Below are positions 41,915-64,000 of a DNA stretch of 64,000 bases, piece by piece. The stretch comes from Utricularia gibba (Eukaryota; Plantae; Magnoliophyta). The stretch lies in assembly GCA_002189035.1 (NCBI GenBank), contig NEEC01000029.1, forward strand, positions 186,001-250,000, given 5' to 3'. Within the stretch, counting starts at the first letter, position 1; every line of letters starts with the position of its first letter. The translations under genes were made by a program, and so were the position numbers. The notes under the pieces were generated by a model, which saw only the letters and a program-made list of their open reading frames with translations, was not told the origin of the DNA and did not search any database.

Positions 41915-43624
41915 GTGGACTCTTGCATAGTCACAGAAATGCTCATCTTCTTCTTGCTTATACTCATTGCGTCGGTTGGGCCGTCGTTGACGCAACCAGC
42001 ATCGGATAAGTTCCACAACTGCGTTAAAGAAAAAAGCCAAACGCCGGTCAACTTTTCGGATGATTTGTCGGCGCCGGAGGACTCCTCATTCATCCCAATT
42101 CTCCAGTCCACCGCCCAGAACCTCCGGTGCTTGCTGCCCTCGGTGCCTAGGCCGCAGCTAATATTCAAACCCAGATACGATTCCCACATCCAGGCGGCTG
42201 TGATTTGCGCCAAAGAGGAGGGAATTCACCTCAGAGTACGCAGCGGCGGACATGATTACGAGTGCCTTTCTTATATTTCTGTGGCGCCGGAGGAGTTTGT
42301 GTTGCTCGATATGTCGAATATGCGTGCTGTGTCAGTGGATATACAGAGTGAAGGTGCTTGGGCTGATGCCGGGGCGACCATCGGAGAAGTTTACTACTGG
42401 ATTTCGAGGAGCAGTGGGGTGTATGGTTTCCCGGCGGGGCTCTATTCCAGTGTCGGGATAGGAGGATACATCTCCGGCGGCGGCTACGGTAGCATGATGA
42501 GGAAGTATGGCCTCGCTGCCGATAATGTTGTAGATGCGAAGATCGTTGATGCCGATGGCCGGATTCTTGATAGGGATGCCATGGGGGAAGACGTTTTCTG
42601 GGCGATCAGAGGCGGCGGTGGCGGCAGCTTTGGGATCATATTATCCTGGAAACTCAAGCTCGTTCCGGTCCCGAGAACAGTAACCGTTTTCACCGTGTCG
42701 AGAACGTGGGAGCAAGGCGCAGCGAAGATTCTTTACAAATGGCAACACATCGCCGATAAAATGGACGAAAATCTCTTCATAAGAGTAGTAGCAGAGCAAG
42801 CGAGTTCCACCATTTCAGGCGACAGAACGGTGGTTACTCTTTACAACGCGTTATTTCTCGGCGGAACCAATAAGCTTCTGAAGTTGATCGGAGAAAGCTT
42901 CCCTGAGTTGGGATTAACAAAAACCGACGCCATGGAAATGAGTTGGATCGATGCAGTTGTTTATATGGCCGGTTTCCCGGCGAACTCCACTGCGGAGATT
43001 CTCCTCCAGGGGAAACCTACATTCCGAAACGCCTTCAAAGCGAAATCAGACTTCGTAAGAAACCCAATTCCCGAAGCCGCAATCGGAGATCTCCTGAAAA
43101 AGCTGCTTGAAGACGATTCCCCTCGGATTATATTCACCCCATACGGCGGCGAAATGGGTCGAATACCGGAAACATCGACGCCGTTTCCCCACCGGAAAGG
43201 CGTCATCTGCAAAATTCAATACGTTTCAATGTGGAAAGATGACGACCCGACATCTGCATCGAAACATATGAACTGGACCAGGGGACTGTACGAGTTCGTG
43301 ACTCCTTATGTTTCATCGTCTCCCAGAGAGGCTTATGCTAACTACAAGGATCTTGATCTCGGAATGAACGGGGAAAACGGGAACACCTTTCCAGCAGCTT
43401 CTTCTTTCGGATTCAGCTATTTCAAGGACAACTTCATCCGACTGGTCGAGATCAAGACGAAGTTCGATCCTGATAACATCTTCAGACATGAACAGAGCAT
43501 TCCAACTTTTCAGCAGTTGTCACAGAATCTTGTTCCCACATCCAATAACCATCCTGGGGATCTCAAACTTGGAACAAATGGAAACTGGAACAGCTCAATT
43601 GCATTTAGATTCAGCTATTTCTAG
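41915..43624 (+). CDS. Berberine bridge enzyme-like FAD oxidase, intronless
   Basis: Signal peptide, RVRSGGHDYE, GGGYGSMMRKYGLAADNVVDA, FWAIRGGGGGSFGII, PREAYANYKDLDLG and DPDNIFRHEQSIP. Confidence 0.93.
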   Translation: MDSCIVTEMLIFFLLILIASVGPSLTQPASDKFHNCVKEKSQTPVNFSDDLSAPEDSSFIPILQSTAQNLRCLLPSVPRPQLIFKPRYDSHIQAAVICAKEEGIHLRVRSGGHDYECLSYISVAPEEFVLLDMSNMRAVSVDIQSEGAWADAGATIGEVYYWISRSSGVYGFPAGLYSSVGIGGYISGGGYGSMMRKYGLAADNVVDAKIVDADGRILDRDAMGEDVFWAIRGGGGGSFGIILSWKLKLVPVPRTVTVFTVSRTWEQGAAKILYKWQHIADKMDENLFIRVVAEQASSTISGDRTVVTLYNALFLGGTNKLLKLIGESFPELGLTKTDAMEMSWIDAVVYMAGFPANSTAEILLQGKPTFRNAFKAKSDFVRNPIPEAAIGDLLKKLLEDDSPRIIFTPYGGEMGRIPETSTPFPHRKGVICKIQYVSMWKDDDPTSASKHMNWTRGLYEFVTPYVSSSPREAYANYKDLDLGMNGENGNTFPAASSFGFSYFKDNFIRLVEIKTKFDPDNIFRHEQSIPTFQQLSQNLVPTSNNHPGDLKLGTNGNWNSSIAFRFSYF

Positions 43625-43839: not shown

Positions 43840-44977
43840 TTAATCACTTTTGTTGGTGGCAGGGTTCCGAATACCTTATCCCAGAGAGAGGATGTGATGC
43901 CAAATCCCTTGTTTTGGATCCGGAAATGATGATTCAAATGATATCTCTGCATCAAAAAAAGTATGAGAAAAGGCCCCATGGATGCAGTAAAAAATCGGCT
44001 GGTCATTCAGTTCATCTACCTTGAGATTCTTGATCATGTTGCTGGATGGCTGTCCATGGTGGACATAATAATGTGTGATATCGTAGATCACGTAGCCGAG
44101 CAGGCCGCCGCCGAACAGTCCAGGTGTAGTTGCCGGAGTAGCCAAAGATTTTATCAAACTCCAGAACTACATTGTTATTGCGAGATGAGAAGAAATCCTG
44201 ATGTCACACAGTCGCTCTGAGCAGAAATGCTCAAGAGATGAAAGCCATGTGTCGTGTAAGAAACGCAAACATTCCCATAAGAAGGAAAAGTTGGCCTAGA
44301 AGGTGATCAGGAGAGTACCGGAAATAGGAGAACAGCCGTTGCAGCAGGAGGGAAAACAAGGCGGAGACCATCCATAGGATGTTTATGATGACAACCGTGG
44401 AGGAGATAATGCATTGTATTACCCCTGTGAGTCAGTAAATGAATAACCATGAAACATCAGAAAGATGAGGATCAAGAACTCTAACCAATATGTCTGTGTC
44501 TTGACATGGAAAAGGAAGCGGTGCAGGATATACTCGAGCAATGTCCACGCGACAATTCCAGATATTATCATTATGCAAAGCTCAAGAACTGTACAGCCTA
44601 GGACAATGGATCTAGAGAGGAACCACCCAACAACCGGGAGCCAAACCAGGGGAATGACCCACCAGTGCGTGCGGGTCAAAAACTGTTGGGCAAAGGAAGC
44701 AAAGTTCATCAATGAGTGAAATCATCTGGCCAAGATAAAGACTGTGTAGACACTGGTAACACCTCCAAAAAATCATTTTCAAAGAATCGTGGGCCTTCCT
44801 TCGTTGCAATAGGCTGATGAACCCATTCTTGGTATCCCTTGCCAAGATGGCCAACCTGTTCAGTTAAGTTCAATCCCGGATTCAGGTGAATGACCCCTAC
44901 AAAATCATCATCAAGGCACGCCCTACCTGAAACACGAGGGGTTTGTTGAAGTCCACTGTGAAGTCCTCTGCTACCAT
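43840..44977 (-). CDS. FAH: Sphingolipid fatty acid 2-hydroxylase, 6 coding exons
   Basis: MVAEDFTVDFNKPLVFQ|VGHLG...WVHQPI, LEYILHRFLFH, HYLLHGCHHKHPMDGLRLVFPP, THYYVHHG and YHLNHHFRIQNKGFGITSSLWDKVFGTLP. Confidence 0.95.
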
Positions 44978-45826
44978 TTTGGCACAGCAAATGCACTGTC
45001 AAAGTTGAAGAAAAAAACTCATGAATTGATAATGTGGTAACATTGTTCTTTGAGCATAATAATCTCGCAAACCAGAAGACCGAGATAAGTCAAATGACAA
45101 GATATTCGAAGCAAATGCAGTATCCTCAAGGGCAGATTCAGCGAGCTTCGTCTCATCAGGCTGATTCAAGAAAATCCAAGATCAAATAAATAATTGAAAC
45201 ACTGCGAATCAGATTCTTAGCCACCCAGCGAGAAACCCAAAAGTTTCAGACAGTAATAAAGAATCCGATGCGACTCAAGCAGAAGACAAAACTTTCATCC
45301 CGAATGATGACCTACCTACAACAATGCGGCTTAGAATCTTGGCGTGAAACAAGGTCTGGATGAATCCCAACTCCGAAAGGCAACTGTAAAATGGCTACGG
45401 CAGTTTGATTCCTGAGAGCAGAAATGGAATCTATGGGCTGAAGTAAGTATCCAGGTGGCGCCAGCGTGGCCGCAGGCCACACCATAAATAATTTAAAAAT
45501 ATAATTTTATTCATTAGTCACATTCAAACAAATCAGGCAATAAAAAATTATAATTAAATTTTTAGTAATCTTGCCTGAGAATATTTTTTAATTGTTCTCT
45601 GGTTGGTAAAAAAATGTGGAAATTCGAATTTTATCACGCGATTAAATAACCAATTAAAACTCAACAAATGAAAAACTATATTACAAAAAAGACCCCTGGA
45701 AAAATGGATATTCCATCTTTGCACCACAACAGATTCAACTCAACCAATATATATACAGCATAGTGATTCAGCTCACGGCGAGTGACAAAACTGGCTGACA
45801 ACGGCACCAGGCTCTGCGTCTCCATG

Positions 45827-48800
45827 CTACCTCTTCAGTTTCCTAAGCTCAGGAGGTACATCAACATCCGCATACTCACCGGTGATTCTGTCAAAAGCCA
45901 TTAGCAGTATGAGTGGAACATCACTCACGGTTGCTCAGATGGCCCAGTTTCCATTGTTTTCAAAAGAACTCAGACAAGCAGAGCAAGGAGCTTGACAAGC
46001 CTTTACCTGTTGTATGATAAGAAGGCATCACCAATTTGTCCTATGACTTTGTTTCTCACCTTCCGGACGCAAACCTGTGGTTTTCAAAGAGTGTTGAGAA
46101 AAGTCGAAATGGGAGTTGTTACCAATCATCTAGGAGATGCATACCTGCACAAGATCGATGGGGAGGGCATCCGGACCCCGGTTGCGATCCCAGTTACGGT
46201 GGATTACAATCCCATTGTCACACTTGTTGTAGAAGTGTGCACTGCCGCTGATGTCGTATAGGTTTGGGGTTCACCGGCCCAGCCATGTAACTAGATATAA
46301 ACCCCAGATTAGGGAAAACGACACCTGGTAAAGTGCAAGCTTGTGAGGTGGCTAACCTGTCTAGGGTGAGCCACGAACCATACATGGCAAGCATGGTGCT
46401 GGGCAAATCGTTTGATTCTTGTCAGCAATTGACTTATGTATTCTGTCTCAGTCCTGTTCTCTGTCATGTTAGATAAGGAAGATAAACTGAAACTTCAGAC
46501 TAGGCAAAGCTGACAGGACTCACTGATTGGAATGACGTTGATGATCTAGCTCATTGTATGGATCAATTACAAGTCCGTTGACACCATGACGTAGTACTGC
46601 GATTTTTGCCAGTTCAAGAACCCAATTGATACTTGGGAGGCAATCGTTTTCACACCTGTTCCATGACATGGTATCCAAAGAATTATACAGTGAAGCAGTG
46701 GATGAGGGGAGGGGAGGATGATATTTCTGGATGCAATTCATGATCATTATAGAACCAAACCCTGTAAAAAACATGGTGATTTCGACAAAACCCATGGTTC
46801 AGTAAGGCAAAACTTGGACATTTTTTAAGTGTGTGTGTGAATTAAGATGCTCAGTTCCATGCAGAGATCAGGGAACCAATTACCTTATAAGATAAAATGT
46901 ATCACTAAGCCACCTCTTTCCTTCCTGTAATTCCTCCACTGTCATCCTCTCGACATTCTCCCCATACCTAAAATCAAAGGAAAGAGCAATGCTGACTCTA
47001 ATCTGTGATAACGACAATCACCATGAGATTTGGTGCCCGCTATTGTATCTTATATTTATTGAACACTTGTTTGATCAATGAAGTACCTAATATTAAAGAA
47101 AGGCTTCCTAACATGTTTTTCCAAAAGTTTTCTTGCATGCTCGCGAACCTGAAAAAGAAAAAATCAACTAAAACGAATAAATAAACCCTCGTGTCCAAAC
47201 TTGAAACAAGATGTGCAAGATGGCAAATGAAGGTTCAGCTCTCAAGCTGAACGACCCGCCCTTTTTTTTTTTTGAAGGGCTCGATCAAAATGCGATGCAT
47301 AGATACTGACACACCGAGACAAATATGAGTGCATGTAGGAGGGTTCAAGATATCAGCATCACAATTTCAACTTCCCAACTCTCAAAATAAATGCAGGACG
47401 ATACCTTGTTTTCCATAGAACAAAGTGCGAATTTCCACCCAGCACCGTGGTTTATGTTGCATAGTAAAGCATCAATCCACTCACTCTTTCCAGAATTTGG
47501 AACCCCAGTTACAATAGTGAGTTCTCCAGGAACCACCTGTAACAGTTTTCAATGTTCAAAGAGGTGGAGTACGTAAGCACAACACGAACTACCCCCTTCC
47601 AAAGATGGAGACACCAAAAACCCTTGAACATTAATTATATGACCACGCAATCTTTGAAAAGGGGGTATACAATGTCAGAGGTGAACAAATGGCAAAGCTT
47701 ACACTTACGTTATACAATGAGTTAAGACCTGTCCACCCAGTTGAGACACCAAGGTCATAACCAAGGGCGTGGTTGTAATAGTCATCAATCTCCTTGAAGT
47801 AATCTTTGAAGTTGAACAACCCTTTTATAGGATAAAGCTCAGCTTTTTCGACAACTTCCTTTAGTGCTTCAGGTCCCATGTAAGTTAGCACCTGATTTAA
47901 AAAAGATAGATTACAATGATTTCCAGCAAAAACATGTATTCCAGGTCTATTGCACATTCAAAATACAAGCTCTGAAGGCAATACTGGCTCATGGTGGTAT
48001 CACATTTCCATGAAGAAGAACCTTTGGTGCATCAGCCATTTCAGCAATTTGTTTAACAATTTTGGAGTTAGAAAGATAATGAGGGTAGACAGAAAACCAT
48101 AATATCAAACCTCATTTGCATCCTTATAACTCTCAGTGCCATCTTTTTTTTTCGGCCATTTGATCCTCCAACATCTGAGAAAGAAAACGATTTCAGCTCA
48201 CTCCAATTTCAATTGCAATTTTTGCATGAAAAATGCAGACAAGCATCCTGATAACATGACCTTTCTCTTCCCAAACGCCTGGCAAGTTCTTCGGCCAAAG
48301 CTTGACCAGGGGGATCAGCATCAGTTGCTAAAATTATACGTGAAGCCTTAAATGAAAGATAAAACCAACAAATAATTTTTCCAGGTGTATCTGCATACAG
48401 AATTTAAAGATAGCAACATAAAAAATGATCAAACCTTATCTATGTAATCCTTGCAGTTCCACAAGTACTGATATTTGATGTCCTGAACTCGGAAAGATGC
48501 AAAACATTAAAAAAAATGGTGGTACTGTAAAATGAACGAGCTTGCAGCTCCAGCAGACTATGTAATGTGTCAGGATTGGTACTTTTTCTTCAGGGGGTAA
48601 TTCTTTACTGGACACCTTTGAAGGGGCACCATCAGGCACACTAACACAATTTCGAAAGCCAGCCTCTTCCATTGCGAGTTTGTCCATCTCACCTTCAACC
48701 TGAAATGAGATACCAGGCAATATGTATATGTTGTTTGAATCAATGATATGTAACAAGCAAAGAGATGCCATTACGATTATGATGTCACTTGCTTCCTTTA

Positions 48801-50775
48801 CATCATCCAGTCCATAAAAAATCTTCTCAGTATTTGCTTCCTGAATTAAGAGAATAATCTAAATGAATCACAAATACAAAAAAAAAAAAAACAAAAAATG
48901 AATGTAGAGAGCCTTAAGAAATTCGTCAGTAAACAGAAAATTAGCATTTAAAAATATCAAATTCACAACCTGAATAATTAGAAGAGCATACCTGCCAAAA
49001 TTTCTTTGCACTGTCACGATACTTGCAACCTATCAGTTCTTTGTTCCTTCGGTAGGTGAAGGCAATCACAATCTGAGGATAAGAAATTATTTTTATAAGC
49101 AGCAGACACCTTAGGCGCATTTCAACAGCACCTTTTGTACACGTCCAAACTATCTTATTTCATCAACCATTGGGAGCCACCCAAAGAGCATTTACAAGCA
49201 CAAAGAAGATTTAAAAGGCACATGGTACAGTAATGTCCTTAAAGAAAATGAAAACAAGACCCGCACCTGATCACCATGTTTTCGCTGCATGACAAAATTT
49301 CTCCTCAATGTTTCTTCTGATATCATGCGCTCAGAAAAGTACGAAAGTAGCTACGGGAAAAGGCCATAAGAGAATGAGAAGGCTGAAATGTGGCATATAC
49401 ACAGTTGGAAAGATATGAGACAAACTAGCCATAAAATGGTGAATTTATCACACCTCCAAATGAGCAGAAAAAGTAAATCAGCAGCCACAGTACAAAAGAA
49501 GAGCTAAATACAAAAAAAAAAAAAAAAAAAAAAAAAGATTACCTGAGGACCCAGTGGTTCAAGATTTAAATCCTCCTCCGAGATCACTCTGGATGGCTCC
49601 TTTGCTACAGTACCACTCATTGCAAAATATGTTGACTTTGCATCTGCAAAAGGCTGAAAACAAGGCAGGATGAAATTACGAGCAGAATAGCACCAAATTC
49701 TCAACGAATTTAACAAAAAAAAAAAACCTACACGAGTAGTGCCTTGCCACCCACATTTAGCTCGAAAACAGTTCCACACTGCTGCTCCCCTAAAGCGCAT
49801 ACAGAAATCAGAGATTCTAAAATCAGAAATACATAGAGAAAATCTCAAGATATCCACAGTAAAAAAATTACCAATCATCATCAATGCGAAGAGACAAACT
49901 CCGCTCATGTGAATCCCCACCTTGACACTACAAAATCAAGAAGTTTAAAGCTCAGTTTCGAACACTGTGCAGACTCTGCATTAAATTGCCGGAGAACTAA
50001 AAAGGTGTAACAAAATTCCCTATTCAGTAACTTTGAGATGAAGGTAACAAACAGCTACATAAAAAGGGGAAGAGGTACAAAGCAAGAAAGTGGATAAGCA
50101 AAAACACGTACCATTGGGCATAATAAACCATTGTATTGTCCCGGTTTGTAATCCATGCCATCAATTCCAATTTCTCGCAGTTTCTGACCTAGAATACTGA
50201 ACTTCCTACCGCAGTCCGCGGTCTCCATATCGACGCTAGAGACTAGATTTGATGAATCATCATCAAGGTTTAAAAAAAAAGGATTCTTTCATTCAAATTA
50301 GACAGCGTGCGTGAAATCGAAGACGATGACTATAATTTATACACGAAAAAACTAAAAACAGAAGCAGAAAACACCACCATTGTGACGGAAAAACTTGTCA
50401 GAAAACGCGGAAAAAAAAAACATTGAGGCAAGGCCGACCCAGAATGGCAATCAACTTAATGAAACGAAATTGAATCATAAAACGCTTACTAGGTCTCGGA
50501 ACTGGCATAGCAGAAGCAGAACGGTAGCACAGGCCCCTCTGAAAAATGAGAGGAAAGCGCCTGGGTGAAGCGTAACCGACGCTGCTTTTCCACCCAGTGG
50601 AACAAAAGAAGCGAGATTGAGAACGCCAAAGATAACAACTGTCCAAAAAGCGGTTCTCTTGCTCAGAAACACCTGGAAAAGGCTTGACGAAGAAATTCTT
50701 GGATTCCATGAAAGTAACTGAATGACTATACAATTTACGGCTACAAAACAGCTTCCTCTGAGGAGGCAGAAGCAT
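45827..50775 (-). CDS. TWINKLE: Organellar DNA primase-helicase TWINKLE, many exons, one apparent frameshift at 46266-46269
   Basis: Transit peptide, zinc finger (LLCPM|CQGG...WNCFRAKCG), TOPRIM (VEGEMDKL), Walker A VTGVPNSGKSEW, LVIDPYNEL, WFVAHPR and ISGSAHFYNKCDNG. Confidence 0.92.
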
Positions 50776-50951
50776 ATCTCTAGTTCGCAAGCTCAAAAAC
50801 AGAGGAAAAAAACCATGAAAAATGAAGACGAAATTGAGGTTCTCAATTCCATGAAAGGGAAGTGCAGTGGGTTTAGGAATCGTTTGTATCCCTCTGCTCG
50901 CGCGTCAGCTATTCGTTTTCTGCGCTTTCTCAATGGGCTGCGCCGCAGTAG

Positions 50952-51292
50952 TTCAATGGGCCCAAGAAGAAAGAACGTGGGTTGGGCCGTTAAACATTAC
51001 GCATGCTCAAAATGTGACGGCCACCAATCCTGCCCTCTCTTTTTCATCATACGAAAACCGAAGGGTAGAGCCAGAGATTACCATCAATGGCTTGCTGTTA
51101 CATAACAGTTTCAAGATTGTATGTTGGGAATGCTGTGATGAGATTGTATACCAAGTGTGGATACATCGAAAATGCATTTGTTATCAATAACACATCGTAT
51201 TGTTATTAAGTTTGGGTTTCAAAGAGATGTTCAGGTGAACAATTCATTGCTTGACATGTATGCAAAACAACGAGATATGAACTCTGCAGAAA
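50952..51292 (+). pseudogene. Chimeric stub: OMA1-like promoter and first 11 codons fused to two fragments of the neighbouring PPR gene
   Basis: 50952-51118 matches the 5' regions of both OMA1-like copies. About 51116-51183 matches PPR 56487-56553 and about 51185-51292 matches PPR 56765-56870. Mini-ORF 51087-51209. Confidence 0.85.
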
Positions 51293-51491
51293 TATGCATA
51301 ATCGACCGATCGATCGGTAACCGAAAAAATGTATCAATATTCATCAATTGATCACATTTATTAAGAAATCATATCACCGTCAACACGCCATTTTTGTTGC
51401 TCAGTTTAGGGTTTACCAAAGAAATCGATCGGTATACCAAAGAAATATGCAAATGATGATTGAAACAAATCGCAGTTTAGGGTTTACCTCA

Positions 51492-51716
51492 TCAGCCATT
51501 TTTTTTTCCCAAGCGGTACAGTGAAATACCGAGACCCACAGTAGTTGCGCCTGTGATGAATCCCCACAAAAAACTGGATAGGTCTTCATTTTTGTGGGAA
51601 GAGGGTGGTGTGGGACGGCATTGATTCGGATCAAATCGAACCGCTAATATGTCAACAGTCTCTCGGGGCTTCATGGCGTCGGTGATAGAAACGGCGACAA
51701 TATCTCGGGGCGTCAT
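51492..51716 (-). other. Orphan 74-codon ORF with a C-terminal hydrophobic segment
   Basis: MTPRDIVAVSITDAMKPRE...LSSFLWGFITGATTVGLGISLYRLGKKNG; no recognisable homolog. Confidence 0.2.
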
Positions 51717-51737
51717 GGCGTCGGTGGTAGAAACGGC
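51661..51737. repeat. Two-copy tandem repeat with a 42-bp period
   Basis: tctcggggcttcatggcgtcggtgatagaaacggc and tctcggggcgtcatggcgtcggtggtagaaacggc. Confidence 0.85.
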
Positions 51738-51807
51738 CGCCGGTGTCGTTCACCCTGTTGAAAAGGCGCAATGATGACGATAGTGTGTGTTCCAAGTACA
51801 TTTAAAT

Positions 51808-52011
51808 GATGGCCTTGGCGGGCAGAGGCGCGTGATGTGAGGTATTTCGAGGTCACGGTGGTGGGCCGTTGCACTTCAATGGGCCCTAACAAGAAAGAAC
51901 GTGGGTTGGGCCGTTATAACATTACACATGCTCAAAGTGTGACGTCCACCAATCCTTCCCTCTCTTTTTCATCATACGAAAACCGAAAGCTAGAGCCATA
52001 GATTACCATCA
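51808..52011 (+). promoter_or_regulatory. Duplicated promoter module of OMA1-like copy 1: primase-homolog 5' fragment plus three site II (TGGGCC) motifs
   Basis: 51808-51858 matches 55815-55865. The rest matches 62761-62912 and, in part, 50952-51086. Confidence 0.7.
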
Positions 52012-53452
52012 ATGGCTTCCTGTTACATAACAGGTTCAAGATTGATTTTGTATGGTGCATTCCCTCGAGACTCTGCCGCTAGAAACGACGTACCCGCAAA
52101 CCTATTTTTCTATCTCCGTTGTCGGCCGTGGAACCCCTTGTCCAGTTCTTCAAATGTGCTCCCAATTGGGCAACAGATTTTCAGAGACACTAGGATGCTG
52201 GCTACGAAAAGCCTATGGAAGAGCCATGATGCTGGTGGGTGGAAGAGATTTTTCGACGGCCGCAAGACACTCCTTAAGCACTTCGATAAGCCCAACGGAT
52301 GGTTCCCCATTGTTAGGGATACTTTGGTTGTAGTTGCCATGTTTGTCGCAGTCTCATGCGTGATCATCTGCCATGGGAAGGTGGTGACTACCCCTTATAT
52401 CAATAGAACCCAATATAGGCTTTTACCTCGTAGTTTCCACAGCACGGTCGCGGACATTGTGGTTGAGTGGAAAAAATATCAATACCGAGACCGAATTTTG
52501 TCTCCTCTTCATCCACTCAGTGTGGGTGTTGGGGCCATGGTACAGCGCATGGTTGATGAATTGCCCGAGGCGGGAGAGGTGCCCGTTTTGAGCTACTTAA
52601 GAAAGGCGATGGGGAGAGATACCAAGGATGATATTCTAGACGCATCAATGGGTAAGAGTACTGAGGTTGGTAATTTGGAAGGGGTGGCATGGGAAGTTAT
52701 TGTGGTTCATGATCTTTGTGTGAATGCTTATTGTTTAGCCAATGGTAAGATATTTATACATACCGGTATAATTGAGTGTTGTCAGACAGATGCTGAACTT
52801 GCAACTGTTCTTGCACATGAGGTAAAAAACAAACAAACATATTGGCTCTCTAGTCATATAATTACATGTTGGATTATGAGACATTTTTTATGTGCAGGTT
52901 GCGCATGTCTTCGCTGGCCACTTTGGCGAGGAGATGTTGTCGTTCATTATACACTACTTTCTTGAAAATAAACTTGCCATCGAAGTGGCTTCTGTGTTGT
53001 TTTATCTTCCACTTCTCCGAAGGTTGGTTATTTTACTACATTGTTGGAGTAGATAGGGAGATCCTTTACATCAACAAGTAACTTGTTTGGTTGCATGATA
53101 AGAGGGTAAATGACCCATTCTTGATGTTTGTAGGAACGAGATGGAGGCAGATCATATAGGGCTCATGCTAATGGCGTCAGCAGGTTACAATCCTCGAGCG
53201 GCTCCCAAATTACATAAGAGGATTGGGGGACGTTCAAAAGGCTATAAAGACTGCCTGGAAACTCATCCCTCAGGAGAGGAGAGAGCTGAAAATCTTTCCC
53301 GATACCAAGTTACGAACGAAGCTTGGGCCACATATACAAGAAGAAAAAGAAAGTGTAGAGGAGTCCACCCAAGGTCCCCCTATGCAAAATCTTTTTTTAA
53401 GGGAGCGTATGCTTGCATTCTTTGTGTTCTGGTGCTGCTGTTGGATGCTTAA
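52012..53452 (+). CDS. OMA1-like: OMA1-like mitochondrial M48 metalloprotease, divergent paralog 1, 3 exons, intact
   Basis: Exons 52012-52821, 52898-53022 and about 53134-53452. Motifs TPYINRT, LSPLHP, LEGVAWEVIVV, NAYCLANGKI, VLAHE|VAH (HExxH), EMEADHIGLMLMASAGYNP and THPSG. Confidence 0.88.
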
Positions 53453-53732
53453 CATATTTTCTTCGTGCCATTACATAGTTTATGAACCCCTGCAAGCCGC
53501 TTGGCTGTCTGCATGCAGCCTTTGTAGAGTGCATCAGCAACCTGATGACTAACAATGTCACAATTCACAAATAATTATAAATTTAAAATGAGTTAGAATC
53601 AAACGAACAACAATTTCTCCGTTCAAACTCGTTGAGTTGATGTCATCACATAGCATAGTTTGCCTACGGCTCCAGTATTCTAGAGATCACTAGAGTCTCC
53701 AGTGTAGATATGGTTCAACTACGGACAGCATA

Positions 53733-55852
53733 CTAAGCATTGCTGATGGTGTTGCATGGCTCTGCCTTTTGAATGGCTTCTCTCAAAGCTTCAGGGCCCA
53801 GAAACTGCAGAACCTGTGATTGAAGGACATAGTGAACAACACTGTTGGCCAACAGCTGTTTCAATCCAGCTGGTGAATCCAAATTAAGCAGAATTAAGTA
53901 AAGTTTTAACCTCGTTTGCATCTTTGAATGAACTGGAAGAATCCCTTTTTGGCCACTGGACTAGGAAGCATCTGCAGTGATCAACACAACAAGATATAGC
54001 GACCATTTTGATGGAGTGGCTGAAAAGAGATTGCGGTGTTCCACCTCTCCTTCCCTAGGCGGCAGCTGAGTTCCTGTGCTAGAGAGCGCCCTGGAAGATC
54101 CCCATCGGTTGCTAGAACAATTCGAGATGCCTGTAACAGATGGAATGAGAATGGTTGTTCATTTTCAAGTGCTCTGATTCAGATGTTTTGTTCAGGAAAG
54201 AACCTTATCGAAGTAGTGCTCACAGTTCCACAGGTACTGGAATCCGGTGTCCTGTTGCAAATTGGAAATGAAGCGATGAGTCAATACAAATGGAAGGATT
54301 TGCTGCAGCTTAAGATGTAAAGGTTCACCTTCTCCATTGCTGGCAGTTCTTTGAGTGAAACTGTTTGTGGTGCACCGGCAGGAACGCTGACACAGTTGCG
54401 AAAACCAGCTTCTTCGACAGAAAGCTTGTCCAATTCACCTTCAACCTACGAGCACCGAACTTCAAGATGATACAATACAAGGGATGTATTCACTAGAAGC
54501 AACTGATCATGGCCATTACAATTATGATCTCATCAGCTTCTTTGATGTCATCAAGTCCATAGAATATCTTTTCAGTGTTCTTTGCCTGCCAAAACCTCTT
54601 TGCGATTGTTCGGTATTTGCAGCCGACAAGGAGCCCCTCTCGTGTATATGTGAAGGCAATGATTTTCTATACCAAACAAACACATAGTCTCAGCTAATGA
54701 GTTGCACACATGATCCGCACCTGTTTCTAATGAAGTTCGATGTTGAAAGGAAACTGACCTCATCACAAACATCTTGCATTACATTGTTTCTTCTCAGTGT
54801 TTCCACAGATATCTTCCTTTCAGCAAAGTAAGCAAGCAACTGAGACATTCTCCATGAAACAACAACCAAAGATTAAGCAGCATCCTTCAAATTGATACTA
54901 ACAGCAAAGAGAAGACGGCCTTACCTCATTCCCTAAAGGTTCCAGTCTTCCCCTCTCAAACGCTAGCATTTGAGATGAATGGTTTTTCTTACCAGGTAGT
55001 TGTTCTCTATCTTCGAAAGATATCTACAAACAGGTTAAAAAAAGCTCATCTAAGCATATGCATCAGCGATGGAAAATCCAGATTTATGCAAGAAGCAGTG
55101 GCACCAAACACAATGGCATCAAAGATCAAGCAATAAGCATGGCCTTCACAATGCCTTCCTTAAGCGGAACAAGCCCGAGGCTCACCTTGTCCGCCCATCC
55201 GCACGATAAGTTGAAACATCTCCACAGTGCAAAACTCCTACAACAAGATACATTAGTCTAAAATCAGCATGAGGTGAAAACCATCACAACTCCAAAAATG
55301 CCACTTACAAATCCTGGGTGAGATGAAACGACAGCGTTTTCAAGCTCAAAGGTCCACCTTTGCACTACCCACAAGAATCATTATACACAAGAGTTTATGA
55401 AACTTGGAATGAATTTCCACAAGTTTTCCTGTAAAGAACTCATTGGAATAAAGAGAGATACCTTGGGGCAATACAATAGATTGTAGTTTCCAGGTGTGGA
55501 TGAGTCTACGTTCAGCCCCTGGGCCTCAAGTTTCGTTTGATGATCACCAACTTCCTCGGTCTCACCTACAATACAAAGAAACGAAAAAAAGTAAAGAGAA
55601 CGGAAATGCTGTCGTAGAAGGAGTCAGATTGCCACATATTTTATGATGAAAAGGAGAACCTGTTGATACAAATGGCCGCGATTGAGAAAAAAACCGGAAC
55701 CCATTACTGCGCACCGAAGCACTTGATGATGCCACAGACGAGAGCGACGGATAGCAGGGAAATCCTAAAGACTGCAATTTTGACGACGAACAGGTAGGTG
55801 AAAACCCTGGTAAGGATGGTCTTGGCGAGCAGATGCGCGTGATGTGAGGCAT
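53733..55852 (-). CDS. Primase homolog protein (TWINKLE paralog with zinc finger and TOPRIM, no helicase), intact
   Basis: Spliced in frame: ...LLYCPK|CKGG...|SFALWRCFNLSCGWADK|...|VEGELDKLSVEEAGFRNCVSVP|DTGFQYLWNC|ASRIVLATDGDLPG|...VLQFLGPEALREAIQKAEPCNTISNA*. Confidence 0.85.
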
Positions 55853-55972
55853 TTCGAGGTCACGGCGATGGCCACGCGGGTAGCGCGATGGATAAAACCG
55901 CTATTCAGGATAAATGGTTTCTTTTTTAAGATTGCTAAACCGTGGTTCTTCTTGACGGTATCGGAGTGAGAA

Positions 55973-58243
55973 ATGCACAAGAATGCTTCTAGTTTGGCGA
56001 ACTTGCTGCAGATATGCATAAACAATAAACTCCTTAAGGCAGGGAAGTTGATTCAGGCGCACATTCACCGTACAAGTCAGCTTTCCAACACTTTCCTAGT
56101 GAACCGTTTGATTCATTTGTACTTCAAATGCGGTTTCAGCGTTGGCGCACACTATCTGTTCGACCAAATGCCTACAAAAAACATATTCTCTTACCACGCA
56201 GTTTTAGATTCTTGCAGCAAGTCAAATGACGTGGCTGGTGCCTACAAGATATTCGAACAAATGCCAGAAAGGAATGAGGTATCGTGGAACTTACTAATAG
56301 GTATGTTCTCAAAAAGTGGTTTTAAAGACAAAGCCTTAGAAAGTTATTACTCCATGAGATTAGATGGTTTTATACCGACACACTTCACGTTGGCCAGTGT
56401 TCTGAGTGTTTGTGGGAGCATGGGCGATTTTGATTGCGGCAGGGAATGCCATGGGGTTGCTACAAAACTTGGGCTTGATGAAAATTTGTATGTTGGGAAT
56501 GCTGTGATGGGGTTGTATACCAAGTGTGGATACATCGAAGATGCATTTGCTATTCATGAGAGGCTACCTGAACATAACCAGATATCTTTTACTGCATTGA
56601 TGGAAGGGCTATTTGAGGCTGGTCGTGTCGATGAAGCACTGGATATGTTTAGGCTTATTCACAAGGCTGGGTCAGTAGATCGTGTTTCATTGCTAAGCGT
56701 ATTAGATGTTTGTTCATTTCTTGTAAATAGTGGCACTGAGGAGAGTTGTAGAATGCAGGGGAAACAAATACATTGTATTGTTGTTAAGCTTGGGTTTCAA
56801 AGAGATGTTCAGGTGAACAATTCATTGCTTGACATGTATGCAAAACAAGGAGATATGAACTCTGCAGAAAAGTTGTTCCTTAGTTCTCCTGGAGTCACTG
56901 TCGTTTCATGGAACATCATGATTTCAGGGTATGGCAATGTATACCAGAAAGACAAGGCGGTCGAATGCCTCAAAAAGATGCAGAGCAGTGGATTTGAGCC
57001 TGATGAGGTAACTCATGTTAATATGCTTTCAGCTTACTTGAAAAATGGCGATATTGAAGGAGGTCTTCAAGTATTCTATTGTATGTCATCACCAAGTCTA
57101 GCCTCATGGAATGCGGTACTATCGGGGTGTTTGCAGCACAACCGTGAAACTGAAGCAGTGACCCTTTTCAAAGAAATGATGCTGAGAAATATCACACCAG
57201 ATCGTACTACCTTTGCATCAGTTATCAGTGCTTATTCAAGCTTGGGGCTTTTGCAAGGGGGAAAGCAAATCCATGCTTGTTTATTGAAGACGGATTTTTG
57301 CACTGATCTGTATATATCAAGTGGGCTGATCAGTGTTTACTCAAAGTGTGCTGAAATAGAATTGGCCAAGCGTGTCTTCAACATGGTTGCTCCCAATCTT
57401 GACGTCGTTTGTTGGAATTCAATGTTAGCGGGTTTATCCATGAATTCAATGGAGATGGAAGCGTTTCTTCTCTTCCAGATGATGCTGAGGGAGGGGTTGA
57501 AGCCAACTGAGTTTTCTTGTGTCACATTACTCAATTGTGGATCTTCATTGACATCTCTGCCACTGGGGAAACAAATCCATGGATTGATGGTGAAAAATGG
57601 GCATGCAGATGATGTTTATGTAGGAACTGCACTGATCGATATGTATTGTAAATGCAGCGATGTCGAGAAAGCTAGATGGTTTTTCGACATTATGCCAGTG
57701 AAAAGCGTTGTCACCTGGAATGTGATGATACATGGCTATGCCCAAAATGGACAGGGAGAAGATGCTGTTAACCTGTTCAAGGAGATGACGTATTCAGGAC
57801 ATAAACCAGATACCATAACCTTTGTTGCAGTGTTGACAGCATGCAGTCATTCAGGATTGATAGATGCTGGATTGGAGATATTCAATTCCATGAAGGAAGA
57901 ACATGGTGTGGAGCCACTTACGGATCATTACACTTGTATAATCGACTCACTGTGTCGGTCCGGTTTGTTTACTGAGGTGGAACACATGGTTGACAAGATG
58001 CTATGCAAGGATGATCGCATCATATGGGAGGCATTGCTCAGTTCTTGTAGAGTTCATGGAAATGTGAAATTAGCAAGAAGAGCTGCGAATGAGCTCATTC
58101 TCCTCAACCACAAGGACCCTGCTCCGTACTCACTGCTAGCCAATATGTATTCATCTTTGGACAGGTGGGAAGATGTAAAAGAAGTTAGAAGCACAATGAA
58201 TGAATATAAGATCTCGAAGGAACCGGGTTATAGTTGGATCTAA
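55973..58243 (+). CDS. PLS-class pentatricopeptide repeat protein with E domain (no DYW), intronless, 756 aa
   Basis: Repeated PLS motifs (VSWNLLIG, GKQIH, VVTWNVMIHGYAQNG), HYTCIIDSLCRSG, IWEALLSSCRVHG and terminal KEPGYSWI. Confidence 0.95.
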   Translation: MHKNASSLANLLQICINNKLLKAGKLIQAHIHRTSQLSNTFLVNRLIHLYFKCGFSVGAHYLFDQMPTKNIFSYHAVLDSCSKSNDVAGAYKIFEQMPERNEVSWNLLIGMFSKSGFKDKALESYYSMRLDGFIPTHFTLASVLSVCGSMGDFDCGRECHGVATKLGLDENLYVGNAVMGLYTKCGYIEDAFAIHERLPEHNQISFTALMEGLFEAGRVDEALDMFRLIHKAGSVDRVSLLSVLDVCSFLVNSGTEESCRMQGKQIHCIVVKLGFQRDVQVNNSLLDMYAKQGDMNSAEKLFLSSPGVTVVSWNIMISGYGNVYQKDKAVECLKKMQSSGFEPDEVTHVNMLSAYLKNGDIEGGLQVFYCMSSPSLASWNAVLSGCLQHNRETEAVTLFKEMMLRNITPDRTTFASVISAYSSLGLLQGGKQIHACLLKTDFCTDLYISSGLISVYSKCAEIELAKRVFNMVAPNLDVVCWNSMLAGLSMNSMEMEAFLLFQMMLREGLKPTEFSCVTLLNCGSSLTSLPLGKQIHGLMVKNGHADDVYVGTALIDMYCKCSDVEKARWFFDIMPVKSVVTWNVMIHGYAQNGQGEDAVNLFKEMTYSGHKPDTITFVAVLTACSHSGLIDAGLEIFNSMKEEHGVEPLTDHYTCIIDSLCRSGLFTEVEHMVDKMLCKDDRIIWEALLSSCRVHGNVKLARRAANELILLNHKDPAPYSLLANMYSSLDRWEDVKEVRSTMNEYKISKEPGYSWI

Positions 58244-58366
58244 ACAACATAGTTGTACCCGTTGAGAAGGTTCTCAATGACTTCCAGCTTACATATAACA
58301 GAAACGAACACAACCGAGAACGCAAGACAAGCCTGAGTTGATATGTGCTCTGAGATTGCAATACAC

Positions 58367-59718
58367 TCACCAGGGAATTTCTTGTCCATCCCAAGCAAAG
58401 AACTTGCCACTGTCAGTAGCCTTGGCATTATTTATTACGGTCAGTAGCTTCTGAACTGAAAATTCTTTTGTGAACAATTTTCCTTCAGGGACATTGCTCT
58501 GGAAGGGCTTTGATAAATCTGTATCCACTGTTCCAGGATGCAAGAGTATACACACAATGGGATCCTTTTTCCTCATGAATTCCACGGTTACATTCTTTGT
58601 CACTGTTTGAAGATATAAAACAGAAATTTGTGAAGCAAACACTGCCTGAAGGAGAACATAGGAGCAACCGAAGTAGTATTTCTTACATTGATTGAGTGCA
58701 GTCTTTGAGGCCCGGTAAGAATGCCACCCCCAAGACCATTGTCTCCGATCGATCCGACTCGCGCACTTAAGTTTGCAACTACTGCAAAGTCTCTCTCAGT
58801 CCCATTTCCTCCTCCCAGCTTCAGCAGAGGCCACATATGCTTTTTCAGGCGAATCATGGCCACAGAGACAAAATGTGAGATTTCTCATGCTAAGTGACAC
58901 CTTCGAGCTGATTCAGCTTCAGCCCTGGTATAGTAGTTCTTACTTACATGCCATACCAGAACTGAAACCGATTGGCTTCCAAAAAGTCGAAAAATCGAAC
59001 AGCGGGGATGATACCTTGATGACCAAAATGGGGCCAACAGCATTCACCTCATAGGTAAGAAGCAAGGATTTCCTCTCAACTTTGTTCAGTGTCGTTTCTA
59101 TACTGAACAATCCACAGAAAGATGCAGTCACTAAACTGAAAAATTCTCAACTAGCATTGCAGTTGATATCTTTACCTGGCCTCAGAAGATTGGGTATCGA
59201 CAGAGTTCCAGATGCGTTTATGAGAAGATTCAGGTACTCATACTTCTCCTTCACCCATTTTGCAGTTTCCTGGAAAACTAACCATTTGCAGAATTAACCT
59301 TCTTTCCGCTGTTAAAACAGTGCAGAGTTCGTTTTTACCTCTATTGTACTATCAACTGTAAGATCCAGGCGACGAATGTCTAAGCGATCGGGAACTTATT
59401 CTTCAATTCCTGAAGCCCTATTGCCCCCTCTGGCGTACGGCACGTCGCCACAACTTGCCCTTTGTTGCTCTTCTCCAGCAATTGCTTAACCTAGCAGCAG
59501 CAGCAGCAACAGCGAATGAGACACGACCATTTGGGTATTGAATGAAGGTAGACAGACAGATCAATGGGACTCACGAATTCGAGTCCGATGCCTCTGGAGG
59601 CGCCTTGAACCAGTGAAATGCCGCCGTCCCATTTTCCAGCGGATGTAGAAAGCATTCGAACGGCCGGAAACATCCTCGTCGCCGACACTATCCGACCACC
59701 AAAATTCGCGTTCATCAT
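58367..59718 (-). CDS. C-factor/CsgA-like short-chain dehydrogenase, multi-exon, apparent frameshift at 59390-59392
   Basis: LVQGASRGIGLEF|VKQLL, EVNAVGPILVIK, VVANLSARVGSIGDN, LLHPGTVDTDLSKPFQ and DSGKFFAWDGQEIPW. Confidence 0.9.
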
Positions 59719-60987
59719 CGATCACGTTTCCGTTTCCATTTCCAAGAATTCTGGTAACTTAAACGCTGGCATAGCATCAAATATGTTCATGATCCGGAAG
59801 TAAACCACGTTTCAGTTTCCATTTCCAGGAATTTTAACACGACGTCGTTTTTACTCTCAAAAACAATAAAATTAGTGAATTTTAATCTCATCGAGACACT
59901 CAAGTTGCCGTAAGATAAAAATCAAATATATTACCCAATTTATGAATTGCTGATTTCTTTTATTATATAGACTTTAAATTAATATTAACAAAACCAATAA
60001 ACTTTATTGTTTAAATAAAAATACCAAAAAATGAATATATTCCCTCCCTAGCATGGGACCCGCACACCAAATTCAAGATTCATTGTTCACATCCATCCCC
60101 CTATGAAAAAAATCTTCCCTTGAATCTTGGTGAACTTGGGTATCACCATTTTTGTAAATCATTTACAAAATTAGTTCGTCATCACTTTTTCTCATACATT
60201 AAAACAAAAAATTAATCGTTAATTTGATCATTTTTATTACACATATATCAAAAAGTGGTAAGTTTTCTTAATGATTCATTTTTGTTGGCAATAGATAACT
60301 TAAACTAGATCTTGATTAGATTCTTTTTATCTTTGCAAATCACATAGAAAAAGCTCAACTCACTCACTATGGCACCCCCACCATTTGAAAATTTCTTTAG
60401 CAAAAGTCGCATCCTCTAGAGCATATGCATCAAAGTTGCTCTTGCACAAAGAAACAATGGGAATTTTGCAAAACTGATCAAGTGGTGTGATGGATTTGAC
60501 ACAACTGCCAGCCTCACTGTTGCCATCCCAATGGGCATGACTTGACATGGAGACTCTGTCTGTCGTCAATGAATGCATAGATCATGTAGCATGATCTCTT
60601 CATTCTTCACCAGGTACATCCATCCATACATGGCATCTACCACAATTTGTATCATTCTATGGTTGCAGTGCGTGATGATCTAGACGACATTTGTATCAGT
60701 GAGCCGTCTTGTTGTTGGCCCCCCTTTTGTCAACCGGAAACTTCTGCTTTTTCTCAGCTTTGTGTCCCATCCCACCAATATGCTGCTGCAGCAGCAGCCC
60801 ATTCCAAACCGCAATCCCCACAACTGCCCCAATGAAGAAACTGAGACCCATGGTGTGAACGAACCACCAAGTATTATACATTTTAAGACGACGACTGAAA
60901 TATGCGTACGTTGAAGGAGGTAGTAAAAGGTGTGTACATTGAAGAGGAGGCTAAACTGTACATCTGTTAACAGTTCCGACCGTGAAC

Positions 60988-62254
60988 TTAATCCGCCTTT
61001 TCCGGTGGAGGCGAATGATCCCAATCCAAACTGAAGAAGCTACTAAAAGGGGTGTTTGGTGGGCCTCCGCGGCCGTCGACGGAGAAGCCACGAGCAAACA
61101 ATGTTTCGAGGGAATCGAGAAGGATATCGTCGGCGTAGTGATTTGAGTCCGGGGGGTTGTGGATGGGCTATTGATGCCTAGTTCTTTCTTCACGGCGGCG
61201 AACCATCCATTTCCGCCGGGTTCTGAGGCTTCCTCATAGTCGGAGATCTTGTCTGGCCGGCGAAAGCGTTCCTTTGCGTCGGCCAGTGATGGTTGTGCTC
61301 CGAGGAGTAAGTGATCACCAGCATGTTTGGATCGGTCCGACTTCGCTCGACTTGCTTCCTCGCGGCGCATCCCTTTGAACTGCTGCATTTGTAGTAAGCC
61401 CTAAAGATGCTTGAAACAATCAGATGATATCGTCATTTTTGGATAATTCACTTGTTGTTGCTCACCTTGGAAAGGGAGAGCCTTTGATGGGCTTCTGTCC
61501 GTACTTCCTCCACGCCCAGAGATCCGACGGCACAACCTCGCCACCTGACCTGGCGTTCGCAGGCAGCGGCACCGGAATACAAACTACCTTCTTCGCCTGG
61601 TTTTTTCTGATAACATCAAAATACTGTAATCAGAAGTGACGCAAATTTTCCGAACTGAGACAAAAACCCTTTTCGCATCGTCACAAAAGCCGGAAAACAC
61701 GGAGAAATGTGTAAGAAGAAAGTGCTGAAGAAGTGAAATGAAAAGCTACGTCGTTTCATCATAAGCTCTGAACCCTATATCGAAAACCCAGTTCTTGAAA
61801 ACTGCATGCGATTTATATACAAACCATAACTTCAACTTCCCCACCTTCTCTTAGTCCCCGTGTTTCGCGGAGACGAGATCTGCGTATCTGGGCCGTCCAT
61901 TTTCTGCTTACTAATCGAAATCCCATCACTATGAACCAATGGACGCTTCTGTGCCGCCGGAGGATCTCCAAACGGCGGCTCCACCCCCATCGATAACCCC
62001 ACTCCCCCTTCATGGAACCCTGGTCTATAGAAACTGGAAGCCTGCAGAAACCCTGAGCCTCGCGTTTCGGTATCACTAAGAAGAGGATCTCTAAAATGGA
62101 TAAACGGGTCCCCGAACTCCTCATCCGGGTAAGCTAGAAAGTTCATCGGAAACTCCCATGACCCCGCTTCTTCCGCTCCCCAGCTTCCTCCTCCGCCGCC
62201 GCCGTTGCCAGCTCGAATGATATCGGCCAAATCCCCCTGATATTTATTCTCCAT
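60988..62254 (-). CDS. WRKY: WRKY transcription factor, group IIe (WRKY14/35-like), 3 exons; exon 3 appears to carry two 1-bp deletions
   Basis: [49 protein letters not shown]|[37 protein letters not shown]. The C-terminal boundary is inferred across frameshifts. Confidence 0.88.
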
Positions 62255-62619
62255 CCAATGACCACACACGAAGAAGAAGAAGGGAGTAACTATTCAGTAA
62301 CAGACAAAGGAAAGCAGAGCTTGAAGAACTCTAACTCATACGCAAGCCAAAGGTTCTATTTATTTAAATCATTTAAAAAATAAATTGGTCAAATTTTTTA
62401 ATTTGTCTTAACTGGACTTCCTCCCCATGTGACACCAAACCATTATCCAATCCAGTTTGTTGAAAAATATGACGATATATAATTATTTAATCACGTAATA
62501 AATGATGTAATGACCACATCAACCACTCGTCGATTACTACGTCTCACCATTTTTTCCATTTAATTAACCTAATCTAAAGAATTATCAACGCCATTAGTTT
62601 AATCCTAAAGTAATATTTT

Positions 62620-62912
62620 GAAAGCATTCGAACGGCCTGGAACATCATCCTAGCCGACACTATCCGACCACAAAAATTCGGGTTCATCGTCGATCACGTT
62701 TCCGGGTAAGGATGGTGCCGGCGAGCAGAGGCCGTGACGTGAGGCATTTCGAGGTAACGGTAGTGGGCCGTTGCACTTCAATGGGCCCCAACAAAATTGA
62801 ACGTGGGTTGGGCCTTTAAAATATTACACATGCTCAAAGTGTGGCGGCCACCATCCTTCCCTCACTTTTTCATCAAACGAAAACCGAAAGGTAGGGCCAG
62901 AGATTACCATCA
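62620..62912 (+). promoter_or_regulatory. Mosaic promoter of OMA1-like copy 2: SDR 5' fragment, primase-homolog 5' fragment and site II module
   Basis: 62620-62704 matches 59648-59732; 62705-62760 matches 55809-55865; the rest matches 51859-52011. Confidence 0.75.
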
Positions 62913-64000
62913 ATGGCTTCTTGTTACATGAAAGGTTCAAGATTGATTTTTTATGGTGCATTCCCTCGAGACTCTGCCAACATCGTACCCACAAACCTAT
63001 TTTTCTATCCCCGTCGTCGGCCGTCGAACCCCTTGTCCAGTTCTTCAAATGTGCTCCCAATTGGGCGACAGATTTTCAGGGACACTAGGATGCTGGCTGC
63101 GAAAAGCCTATGGAAGAGCCATGATGCTGGTGGGTGGAAGAGATTTTTCGACGGCCGCCAGACACAACTTAAGCACTTCGATAAGCCCAACGGATGGTTT
63201 CCCATTGTTAGGAATACTTTGATTGTAGTTGCCATGTTTGTCGCAGTCTCATGCGTGATCATATGCCGTGGGATTGTAGTGATTACCCCTTATACGAATA
63301 GAACCCAGTGCGGGCTTTTACCTCGTAGTTTCCTCAGGACGGTCGCGGACGTTGCGGTTGAGTGGATAAAATATGAATACGGAGACCGAGTTTTGTCTCC
63401 TCTTCATCCAGATAGTGTGAGGGTTGGGGCCATAGCACAGCGCATAATTGATGAATTGCCCAGGGCGAGAAAGGTGCCCGTTTTGAGCTACTTAAGAAAG
63501 GCGTTGGGGAGAGATACCAAGGATGATACTCTAGACGCATCAATGAGTAAGAGTACTGTGGTTGGTGACCGAAAAAATAAGTATTTGGAAGGGGTGGCTT
63601 GGGAAGTTATTTTGGTTGATGATCCTTCTGATGAGGCTTATTGTTTACCCAATGGTAAGATATTTATGTATACCGGTATGCTTGAGTTTTGTCGGACAGA
63701 TGCTGAAGTTGCAGCTGTTCTTGCACACGAGGTAAAAAAGCAAACAAACACATTGGCTCTCTAGTGATATAATTACATGTTGGATTATGGGACATTTTTT
63801 ATGTGCAGGTCGCGCATGTCTTCGCTGGCCACTCTGGCGAGAAGATATTGTTGTGGTTGATTATACGATGCTTTCTTGTAAATGAACTTGCTATCGAAGT
63901 GGCTAATGTGTTGTTATTTCTTCCGCTTTCTCGAAGGTTGGTGATTTTATTACTTGTTTGGTGGTTTGCTTGCAGTGGATTTGATTCCATGGTGTTTGGC
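62913..64000 (+). CDS. OMA1-like: OMA1-like M48 metalloprotease, divergent paralog 2 (exons 1-2 visible, truncated by the window end)
   Basis: Exon 1 62913-63731 ends VLAHE; exon 2 from 63809 begins VAHVFAGH. Same intron positions as copy 1. Confidence 0.88.

Follow-up and report, generated by a model that had tools for sequence, protein, structure and literature searches.

We found two OMA1-like genes of the Peptidase_M48 family (PF01435), both on the plus strand and 10.9 kb apart, in a 64,000-nt stretch of Utricularia gibba DNA (the window, whose positions are used throughout). On balance we favor the reading that these copies, at least two in this plant and recently duplicated, belong to a lineage-specific family of retuned mitochondrial OMA1 paralogs and are not the housekeeping OMA1. 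A blastn comparison of the window with itself aligns 51817-53045 with 62720-63958 at 88% DNA identity. With a PF01435 score cut-off of 20.3 bits, copy 1 scores 41.1 bits in the open reading frame (ORF) 52012-52965 and 30 bits in the ORF 53141-53452, where the C-terminal end of the profile matches; copy 2 scores 37.6 bits in the ORF 62913-63764. These two are the sole loci in the window that match ordinary OMA1 proteins by tblastn.

Copy 1 spans 52012-53452 and can be described as three exons with GT/AG borders and an intact frame, giving a product of 417 amino acids (aa). Exon 1 (52012-52821, plus strand; 270 aa) encodes the N-terminal region, a transmembrane-like helix at about residues 96-120 as judged by hydropathy (TM1), and the M48 core as far as the H-E of HEVAH; it was delimited by its ORF, the PF01435 match, a GT donor at 52822 and an intron placed as in Sesamum OMA1. 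Exon 2 (52898-53022, plus strand), set by an AG acceptor at 52896-52897, a GT donor at 53023 and the alignment to ordinary OMA1, supplies the remainder of HEVAH and the hydrophobic helix behind it. Exon 3 (53134-53452, plus strand) carries EMEAD, which is the third zinc-ligand motif, then THPSG and a hydrophobic C-terminal extension of about 25 aa; its evidence is the PF01435 match, the alignment and an RNA-contig junction at the same acceptor. The tail (53383-53452), some 25 hydrophobic residues absent from ordinary OMA1, may be a second membrane segment or mere read-through to the next stop, and none of the RNA contigs from two RNA runs lies over it.

Copy 2 has an intact exon 1 (62913-63731, plus strand; 273 aa), recognized by its ORF, PF01435 match and donor site, and by sequence reading an intact exon 2 (63809-63936, plus strand) that completes HEVAH, so the motif lies across the exon 1/2 junction in both copies. 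Its intron 2 begins at 63937 and is still open at the window end, with exon 3 outside. Contigs from the public runs X1 and X6 (both listed tentatively as DNA) and X8 (listed tentatively as RNA) fit copy 1 from 53094 on, and their loose end before that position consists of the last 26 letters of the window and four more; a copy with the intron 2 of copy 2 thus leads on to sequence that resembles copy 1 by 95% or more from the last part of intron 2 through exon 3. Probably, then, copy 2 is complete, with a third exon that should start about 45 nt past the window end. The initial annotation had described two full OMA1-like genes and a stub: copy 1 and exons 1 and 2 of copy 2 are indeed intact, but copy 2 runs past the window, and the stub holds nothing of M48 beyond the opening 33 nt of coding sequence.

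Both copies are far from ordinary OMA1. In an exhaustive phmmer search against 1.84 billion representatives the best match had 36% identity (E = 5e-18), and every named match is a plant OMA1; diverged OMA1 representatives from Heracleum, Aquilegia, Tarenaya and Brachypodium are also among the matches. A word-indexed protein search with exon 1 at E <= 1e-5 returned nothing, a result of the stringent cut-off and of a divergence so great that words are no longer shared, and a metagenome scan with exon 1 found no relative. The tblastn alignment spans about residues 70-435 of ordinary OMA1. The copies are about 36% identical to each ordinary OMA1, whereas those share 61-87% with Sesamum; ordinary eudicot OMA1s have 55-66% identity to a Rhododendron query, and 78-87% is found within Lamiales. 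A maximum-likelihood tree joins copies 1 and 2 with full support; their common stem measures 2.48 changes per site, where the median tip has 0.21, and the tree does not settle their place among the eudicots. Across 112 ordinary OMA1s, 121 alignable columns show an invariance of 98% or more; copy 1 keeps 69 of them (about 43% lost).

Comparison with the conserved type (AtOMA1 At5g51740 and the Sesamum and Paulownia genes) shows what has been kept: the Peptidase_M48 domain, the N-terminal membrane helix, three exons with introns at the same places (as read in copy 1 and Sesamum OMA1), and the catalytic motifs HExxH, ExxxD and THPSG, all intact in the alignment. The differences are the low identity (about 36%, against 55-87% among the ordinary proteins), the changed near-invariant residues, the deletion of about 50 residues of the middle region and of 7-8 residues behind HExxH, the added hydrophobic tail of about 25 residues, and another genomic place. 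A retrocopy origin is ruled out, both ancestral introns being kept, and the founder therefore arose by DNA-level duplication.

The genomic place was examined in relatives. Around the orthologous PPR gene, Erythranthe guttata has Toprim (minus), a kinase, bHLH, a methyltransferase, PPR (plus), L20, SDR (minus) and WRKY (minus), and Sesamum indicum has a kinase, bHLH, a methyltransferase, PPR, LTP and SDR. No M48 gene occurs within 22 kb in either orthologous block, by annotation and tblastn, nor on the Genlisea contig with the PPR ortholog. The Erythranthe comparison starts at Toprim, and the TWINKLE-Toprim interval of relatives lies outside its reach. The ordinary OMA1 of Paulownia and Sesamum is found in another conserved block, ordered NHX (Na/H exchanger), DEAD helicase, OMA1, PPR and P450. 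The Utricularia copies lack both the identity and the location of conserved-type OMA1. These comparisons support that the copies were inserted into a conserved block, one that is collinear with its counterparts in Erythranthe and Sesamum, much as the initial annotation had proposed in calling them an array inserted into such a block. As a separate observation, the ordinary Lamiales OMA1 (Paulownia, Sesamum) adjoins an E-class PPR gene and a DEAD-box helicase of RH7/DDX21 type, and a Capsicum OMA1 record is even named after that helicase.

The copies might instead be the relocated sole OMA1 of this plant, fast because the genomes of the whole family are fast, and still engaged in ordinary inner-membrane quality control; we regard this as distinctly unlikely. 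It would agree with the high substitution rates that Lentibulariaceae reportedly show in all three genomes (PMC5749785), and with the mitochondrial quality-control protease DEG10, one of the genes highlighted for adaptive specialization in U. gibba in the context of COX and reactive oxygen species (ROS) (PMC4350169). No ordinary U. gibba OMA1 was identified among Logan-derived proteins, an assembly-wide search being no part of the scope; the sole such protein in the Lamiales OMA1 clade, unnamed (ERR329084/ERR329082), cannot be tied to U. gibba. Yet the neighboring PPR protein has kept 64-67% identity to Lamiales, while the copies stand at 36% where 78-87% is the norm for Lamiales OMA1, and this far greater divergence than that of a gene alongside counts for retuned paralogs. 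The loss of 43% of near-invariant residues, the deletion of about 50 residues, and a ratio of amino-acid to silent change (dN/dS) that is near 1.4 between the copies and well away from the 0.22 level of conserved Oma1 likewise argue against a sole ortholog.

Selection between the copies was estimated over 309 codons: dS = 0.088, dN = 0.120 and dN/dS = 1.37, with a bootstrap confidence interval (CI) of 0.88-2.4 that excludes the 0.22 level of conserved Oma1 (PMC7846149). Neither copy has a stop, although 97 random substitutions leave the frame open in 4.3% of trials (P = 0.043). The three coding indels (6, 15 and 3 nt) are all in frame, whereas the four non-coding indels are all of 1 nt. Differences between the copies affect 13% of residues in the N-terminal region and 8% in TM1 (2/25), but 28-34% of those in the M48 domain and in the helix behind HExxH; in that helix 13 of 38 residues differ. 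Silent divergence is lower in the 5′ part (dS 0.05 vs. 0.14), which also allows gene conversion there. As the sequences read, frame and anchor are kept and the domain changes freely, the reverse of an ordinary enzyme.

Transcription was followed with contigs of public runs placed on 50900-56890 at 95% likeness or more, two of them RNA runs (X8 and X12); such contigs testify to presence and not to absence. RNA depth is 2-7 at 53100-53299. One X8 contig has the end of exon 2 (one letter off copy 2) joined directly to exon 3, so that a copy-2-like transcript bears out the predicted splice site, and another X8 contig keeps the intron. A spliced OMA1-like transcript thus exists at low depth. Splicing is plain in the neighboring primase homolog, where eleven CT..AC joints reach a depth of 12-38.

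Several observations weigh against retuned paralogs. The dN/dS ratio is not significantly above 1 (binomial P = 0.13). Differences between the copies are spread over the three codon positions as 34/32/31, and they fall on 25% of OMA1-conserved columns and 22% of variable ones; neutral drift would give both patterns as well. In neither of the two RNA runs does a contig of 95% likeness or more cover exon 1 of copy 1. Mitochondrial import is at most putative, and the first 60 residues have only a mildly basic character. The partner protein is hypothetical, and the reading of the copies as paralogs draws on the non-syntenic place and the divergence.

Much of this would suit redundant duplicates that drift without function, pseudogenes in the making in which no stop has yet appeared, an explanation we hold to be rather unlikely. 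To the even spread over codon positions and the conserved columns struck as often as variable ones can be added a dN/dS interval that includes 1, a coding divergence of 10.5% that equals the non-coding level (upstream 9.8%, intron 1 5.3%), an RNA signal that is low or absent, and the stub, which shows that the region yields dead fragments. Drift does not readily explain why about 310 codons are intact in both copies, given the small probability of escaping a stop and the contrast of in-frame coding with 1-nt non-coding indels. Nor does it account for catalytic motifs that outlived a stem of about 2.5 changes per site, for the selective conservation of the N-terminus and TM1, or for a correctly spliced transcript.

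The promoters of the copies are mosaics. That of copy 1, with its 5′ region (51805-52011, plus strand; blastn and motif count), begins with a 60-nt piece common with the primase/PPR intergenic 5′ region (55812-55871) and continues with a segment bearing three TGGGCC site-II elements. That of copy 2 (62620-62912, plus strand; same methods) combines an 85-nt copy of the SDR 5′ end (62620-62704 = 59648-59732), a primase/PPR 5′ piece (62702-62760 = 55806-55865) and again three TGGGCC elements. The TGGGCC-bearing segment is common to the promoters of copy 1, copy 2 and the stub. The window has eight paired TGGGCC elements where 0.14 would be expected, five of them in the three OMA1-like promoters; the other three (10951-10986, 25228-25275 and 33701-33740) presumably mark promoters of other genes. 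Site-II elements of the TGGGCC/T type typically occur in nuclear genes whose products are mitochondrial or ribosomal proteins, and the pairs hint at promoters of this kind.

The stub (50939-51119, plus strand) was delimited by blastn as a copy of the OMA1-like promoter (about 150 nt, with two TGGGCC site-II elements) and the first 33 nt, or 11 codons, of the coding sequence (CDS); it is 91% identical to 51862-52044 and 85% to 62764-62945. Ordinary OMA1s gave no tblastn match there, and there is no M48 domain. Fused to it are two PPR coding fragments (51117-51292, plus strand; blastn), 51117-51184 corresponding to 56486-56553 (94%) and 51189-51292 to 56767-56870 (95%). Its composition marks the stub as a dead mosaic and not as a protease gene cut short. 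A carrier transposon of the kind that has long terminal inverted repeats was rejected, there being no inverted repeat of 60 nt or more in 44000-64000; this test bears on such carriers and not on Helitron or Pack-MULE capture. Run X6, a later run, has several indels or replacements in the stub region at 51303-51459 and a 31-nt skip within 53317-53349, in the coding region of the C-terminal tail of copy 1; both places therefore vary among samples or near-identical copies. The summed X6 contig depth over exon 1 is 2-3 times that of the flanks, where contig depth does not equal copy number.

The sequence shows the founder to be a DNA-level duplicate that landed outside the ancestral OMA1 block and gained a promoter patched from the 5′ ends of neighboring genes. 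Small mosaic duplications then re-duplicated it locally into copy 1, copy 2 and the promoter-only stub fused to PPR pieces. If the copies are retuned paralogs, the proteins would keep what the inner membrane and zinc binding need (N-terminal region, first membrane helix, HExxH, ExxxD and THPSG), and since the last duplication the M48 domain would have diverged faster than the N-terminus, with amino-acid change at or above the silent rate in an open frame. A mitochondrial inner-membrane location is hinted at by the conserved N-terminal region and the site-II elements. The likeliest mechanism is an OMA1 derivative, anchored in the membrane, with an exposed domain that was and still is under retuning so as to bind or cleave a mitochondrial membrane protein that itself keeps changing. 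This would be a co-evolution of nucleus and mitochondrion in the same evolutionary mode as beet RF-Oma1. Candidate partners could be a sterility-causing ORF, which would make the copies strict restorers, or ordinary fast-evolving respiratory subunits. Another frame for such co-evolution is the COX/ROS hypothesis for Utricularia with its adaptive DEG10 changes (PMC4350169).

The beet genes are the closest known system. RF-Oma1 forms a family of lineage-specific paralogs that occurs in Beta vulgaris alone; it lies off the syntenic Oma1 block, has two introns like bvOma1, and its copies are clustered and recombinant. The family has a dN/dS of 1.23, where conserved Oma1 has 0.22, and AtOma1 on chromosome 5 lies in a block syntenic with that of bvOma1 (Arakawa et al., 2020; PMC7846149). 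The Utricularia copies resemble the beet genes (Rf1; bvORF20 and copies) in DNA-level duplication of OMA1 with two introns, a place off the syntenic block, apparent clustering that is partly mosaic, dN/dS of about 1.2-1.4, a kept zinc motif, and far greater divergence than the conserved ortholog. They differ in belonging to Lamiales and not Caryophyllales, in being known from sequence alone where the beet target is preSATP6, in their conserved TM1 and variable M48 domain, and in promoters patched from the 5′ ends of neighbors. Clustering, copy turnover, recombination and high dN/dS are also hallmarks of restorer-like PPR (RFL) clusters (named in PMC7846149), a different protein family with an RNA-binding mechanism; the PPR gene of the window is a conserved E-class ortholog of At4g20770, which rules it out as restorer-like.

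By analogy with beet RF1-Oma1 and preSATP6, the copies could be strict restorers of fertility, an arms-race cluster whose products bind or remove a mitochondrial sterility protein in anthers; we consider this unlikely. Every sequence-level RF-Oma1 feature of PMC7846149 has a counterpart here (a putative lineage-specific paralog off the syntenic place, two introns, and an apparent local cluster of two copies and a mosaic stub within 13 kb), dN/dS of 1.37 is close to the beet value of 1.23 and away from the 0.22 of conserved Oma1, the helix behind HExxH is highly variable (13/38 residues), and an expression limited to anthers would fit the low depth in bulk RNA. TM1, however, is the part most conserved between the copies (2/25), whereas the selected sites of beet are mostly in transmembrane helices. 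U. gibba largely selfs and spreads clonally. That habit would weaken an arms race between sterility and restorer, and no male sterility, gynodioecy or restorer genetics was found in the literature for the genus Utricularia. The U. reniformis mitogenome can be cited on both sides: it has many transcribed ORFs without known identity, for which cytoplasmic male sterility was raised as a possibility, but no truncated atp genes joined to such ORFs (PMC5516982).

Diverged extra Oma1 copies have been tabulated in eight plant genomes (Eucalyptus, Fragaria, Lotus, Medicago, Helianthus, rice, barley and beet; PMC7846149). The Utricularia copies are like this diverged type (Arakawa et al., 2020, Table 1) in being lineage-specific extra homologs of low similarity to AtOMA1, sporadic in angiosperms; for Lamiales that survey has only two conserved Sesamum copies, and for those diverged copies neither selection pattern nor promoter structure was described. 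The kind is thus already known; the Utricularia copies add a new order to it, with the particulars that the promoters are mosaic, the anchor is conserved and the domain varies. The initial annotation suggested that the array might be undescribed. Within the reach of the literature search this is true of the species, the only co-mention of Utricularia and OMA1 being an annelid study, but not of the class. The same annotation considered an independent recruitment in a different lineage. Independence of the duplication from that of beet follows from the neighboring PPR protein, whose best matches are Lamiales proteins, and from the restriction of RF-Oma1 to Beta vulgaris; the restorer role is an analogy.

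The authors of the Rf1 work asked how the gene of a quality-control protease becomes a suppressor of sterility-inducing mitochondria. To our knowledge beet Rf1 is the only OMA1-derived restorer. A second, unrelated lineage with the same mode (non-syntenic, introns kept, clustered, mosaic, amino-acid change no slower than silent change, zinc site kept) would be a natural replicate, with which it could be tested whether the path is general and which parts of OMA1 are retuned, and the tiny, gene-dense genome makes the whole locus easy to resolve. It is a doubtful but conceivable extension that a carnivorous lineage with unusual, fast-evolving mitochondria has, for the second time and independently, recruited duplicated OMA1 genes to suppress a mitochondrial protein that is harmful or selfish, with the anchor constant, the exposed M48 domain diversifying and promoters taken from neighbors. 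If the copies merely drift, the locus would still be a clean case in which small mosaic duplications have built promoters out of the 5′ ends of adjacent genes.

The gene order in the window is BBE/FAD oxidase, a long minus-strand gene with Toprim-like exons, stub, copy 1, Toprim/primase homolog (minus), PPR (plus), SDR (minus), WRKY (minus) and copy 2; introns in the stretch are very short (71-162 nt) and genes tightly packed. Among the conserved neighbors, the Toprim/primase homolog (53542-55660, minus strand) has about 11 short introns, with CT..AC joints in RNA runs X8 and X12, and is collinear with the Erythranthe Toprim gene. The PPR gene (55973-58243, plus strand) is E-class, with Pfam PPR and E_motif matches, and a 1:1 ortholog of At4g20770; its best matches, at 64-67% identity, are Lamiales orthologs named At4g20770, and the Genlisea aurea protein has 62%. 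The SDR gene (58367-59718, minus strand, start codon at 59718) was assigned by tblastx collinearity with the Erythranthe adh_short gene, and the 5′ part of a WRKY gene (61220-62269, minus strand, limits approximate) by tblastx matches to the Erythranthe WRKY gene. The initial annotation had placed the OMA1-like genes among TWINKLE, a primase homolog, PPR and SDR; the last three are confirmed and joined by WRKY, while for the minus-strand gene it called TWINKLE the check covered the primase part, with Toprim-like similarity at 48140-50200 (Pfam and PDB searches with small exons, aimed at the helicase part, were uninformative).

Some minor observations concern these neighbors. The primase homolog (minus) and PPR (plus) are divergent neighbors about 300 nt apart (53542-55900; 55658-56726), and one X8 contig of 2129 nt runs from the spliced primase exons through into the PPR CDS, either because the transcripts overlap or because two transcripts from a common bidirectional promoter were merged into one contig. 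An intron-less ORF of 569 aa at 41915-43624 (plus strand), immediately upstream of the TWINKLE-like gene, has FAD_binding_4 and BBE domains, as in a berberine-bridge-like oxidase. BBE-like genes flank Twinkle on Arabidopsis chromosome 1 as well, and the Genlisea contig with the PPR ortholog also bears a BBE gene.

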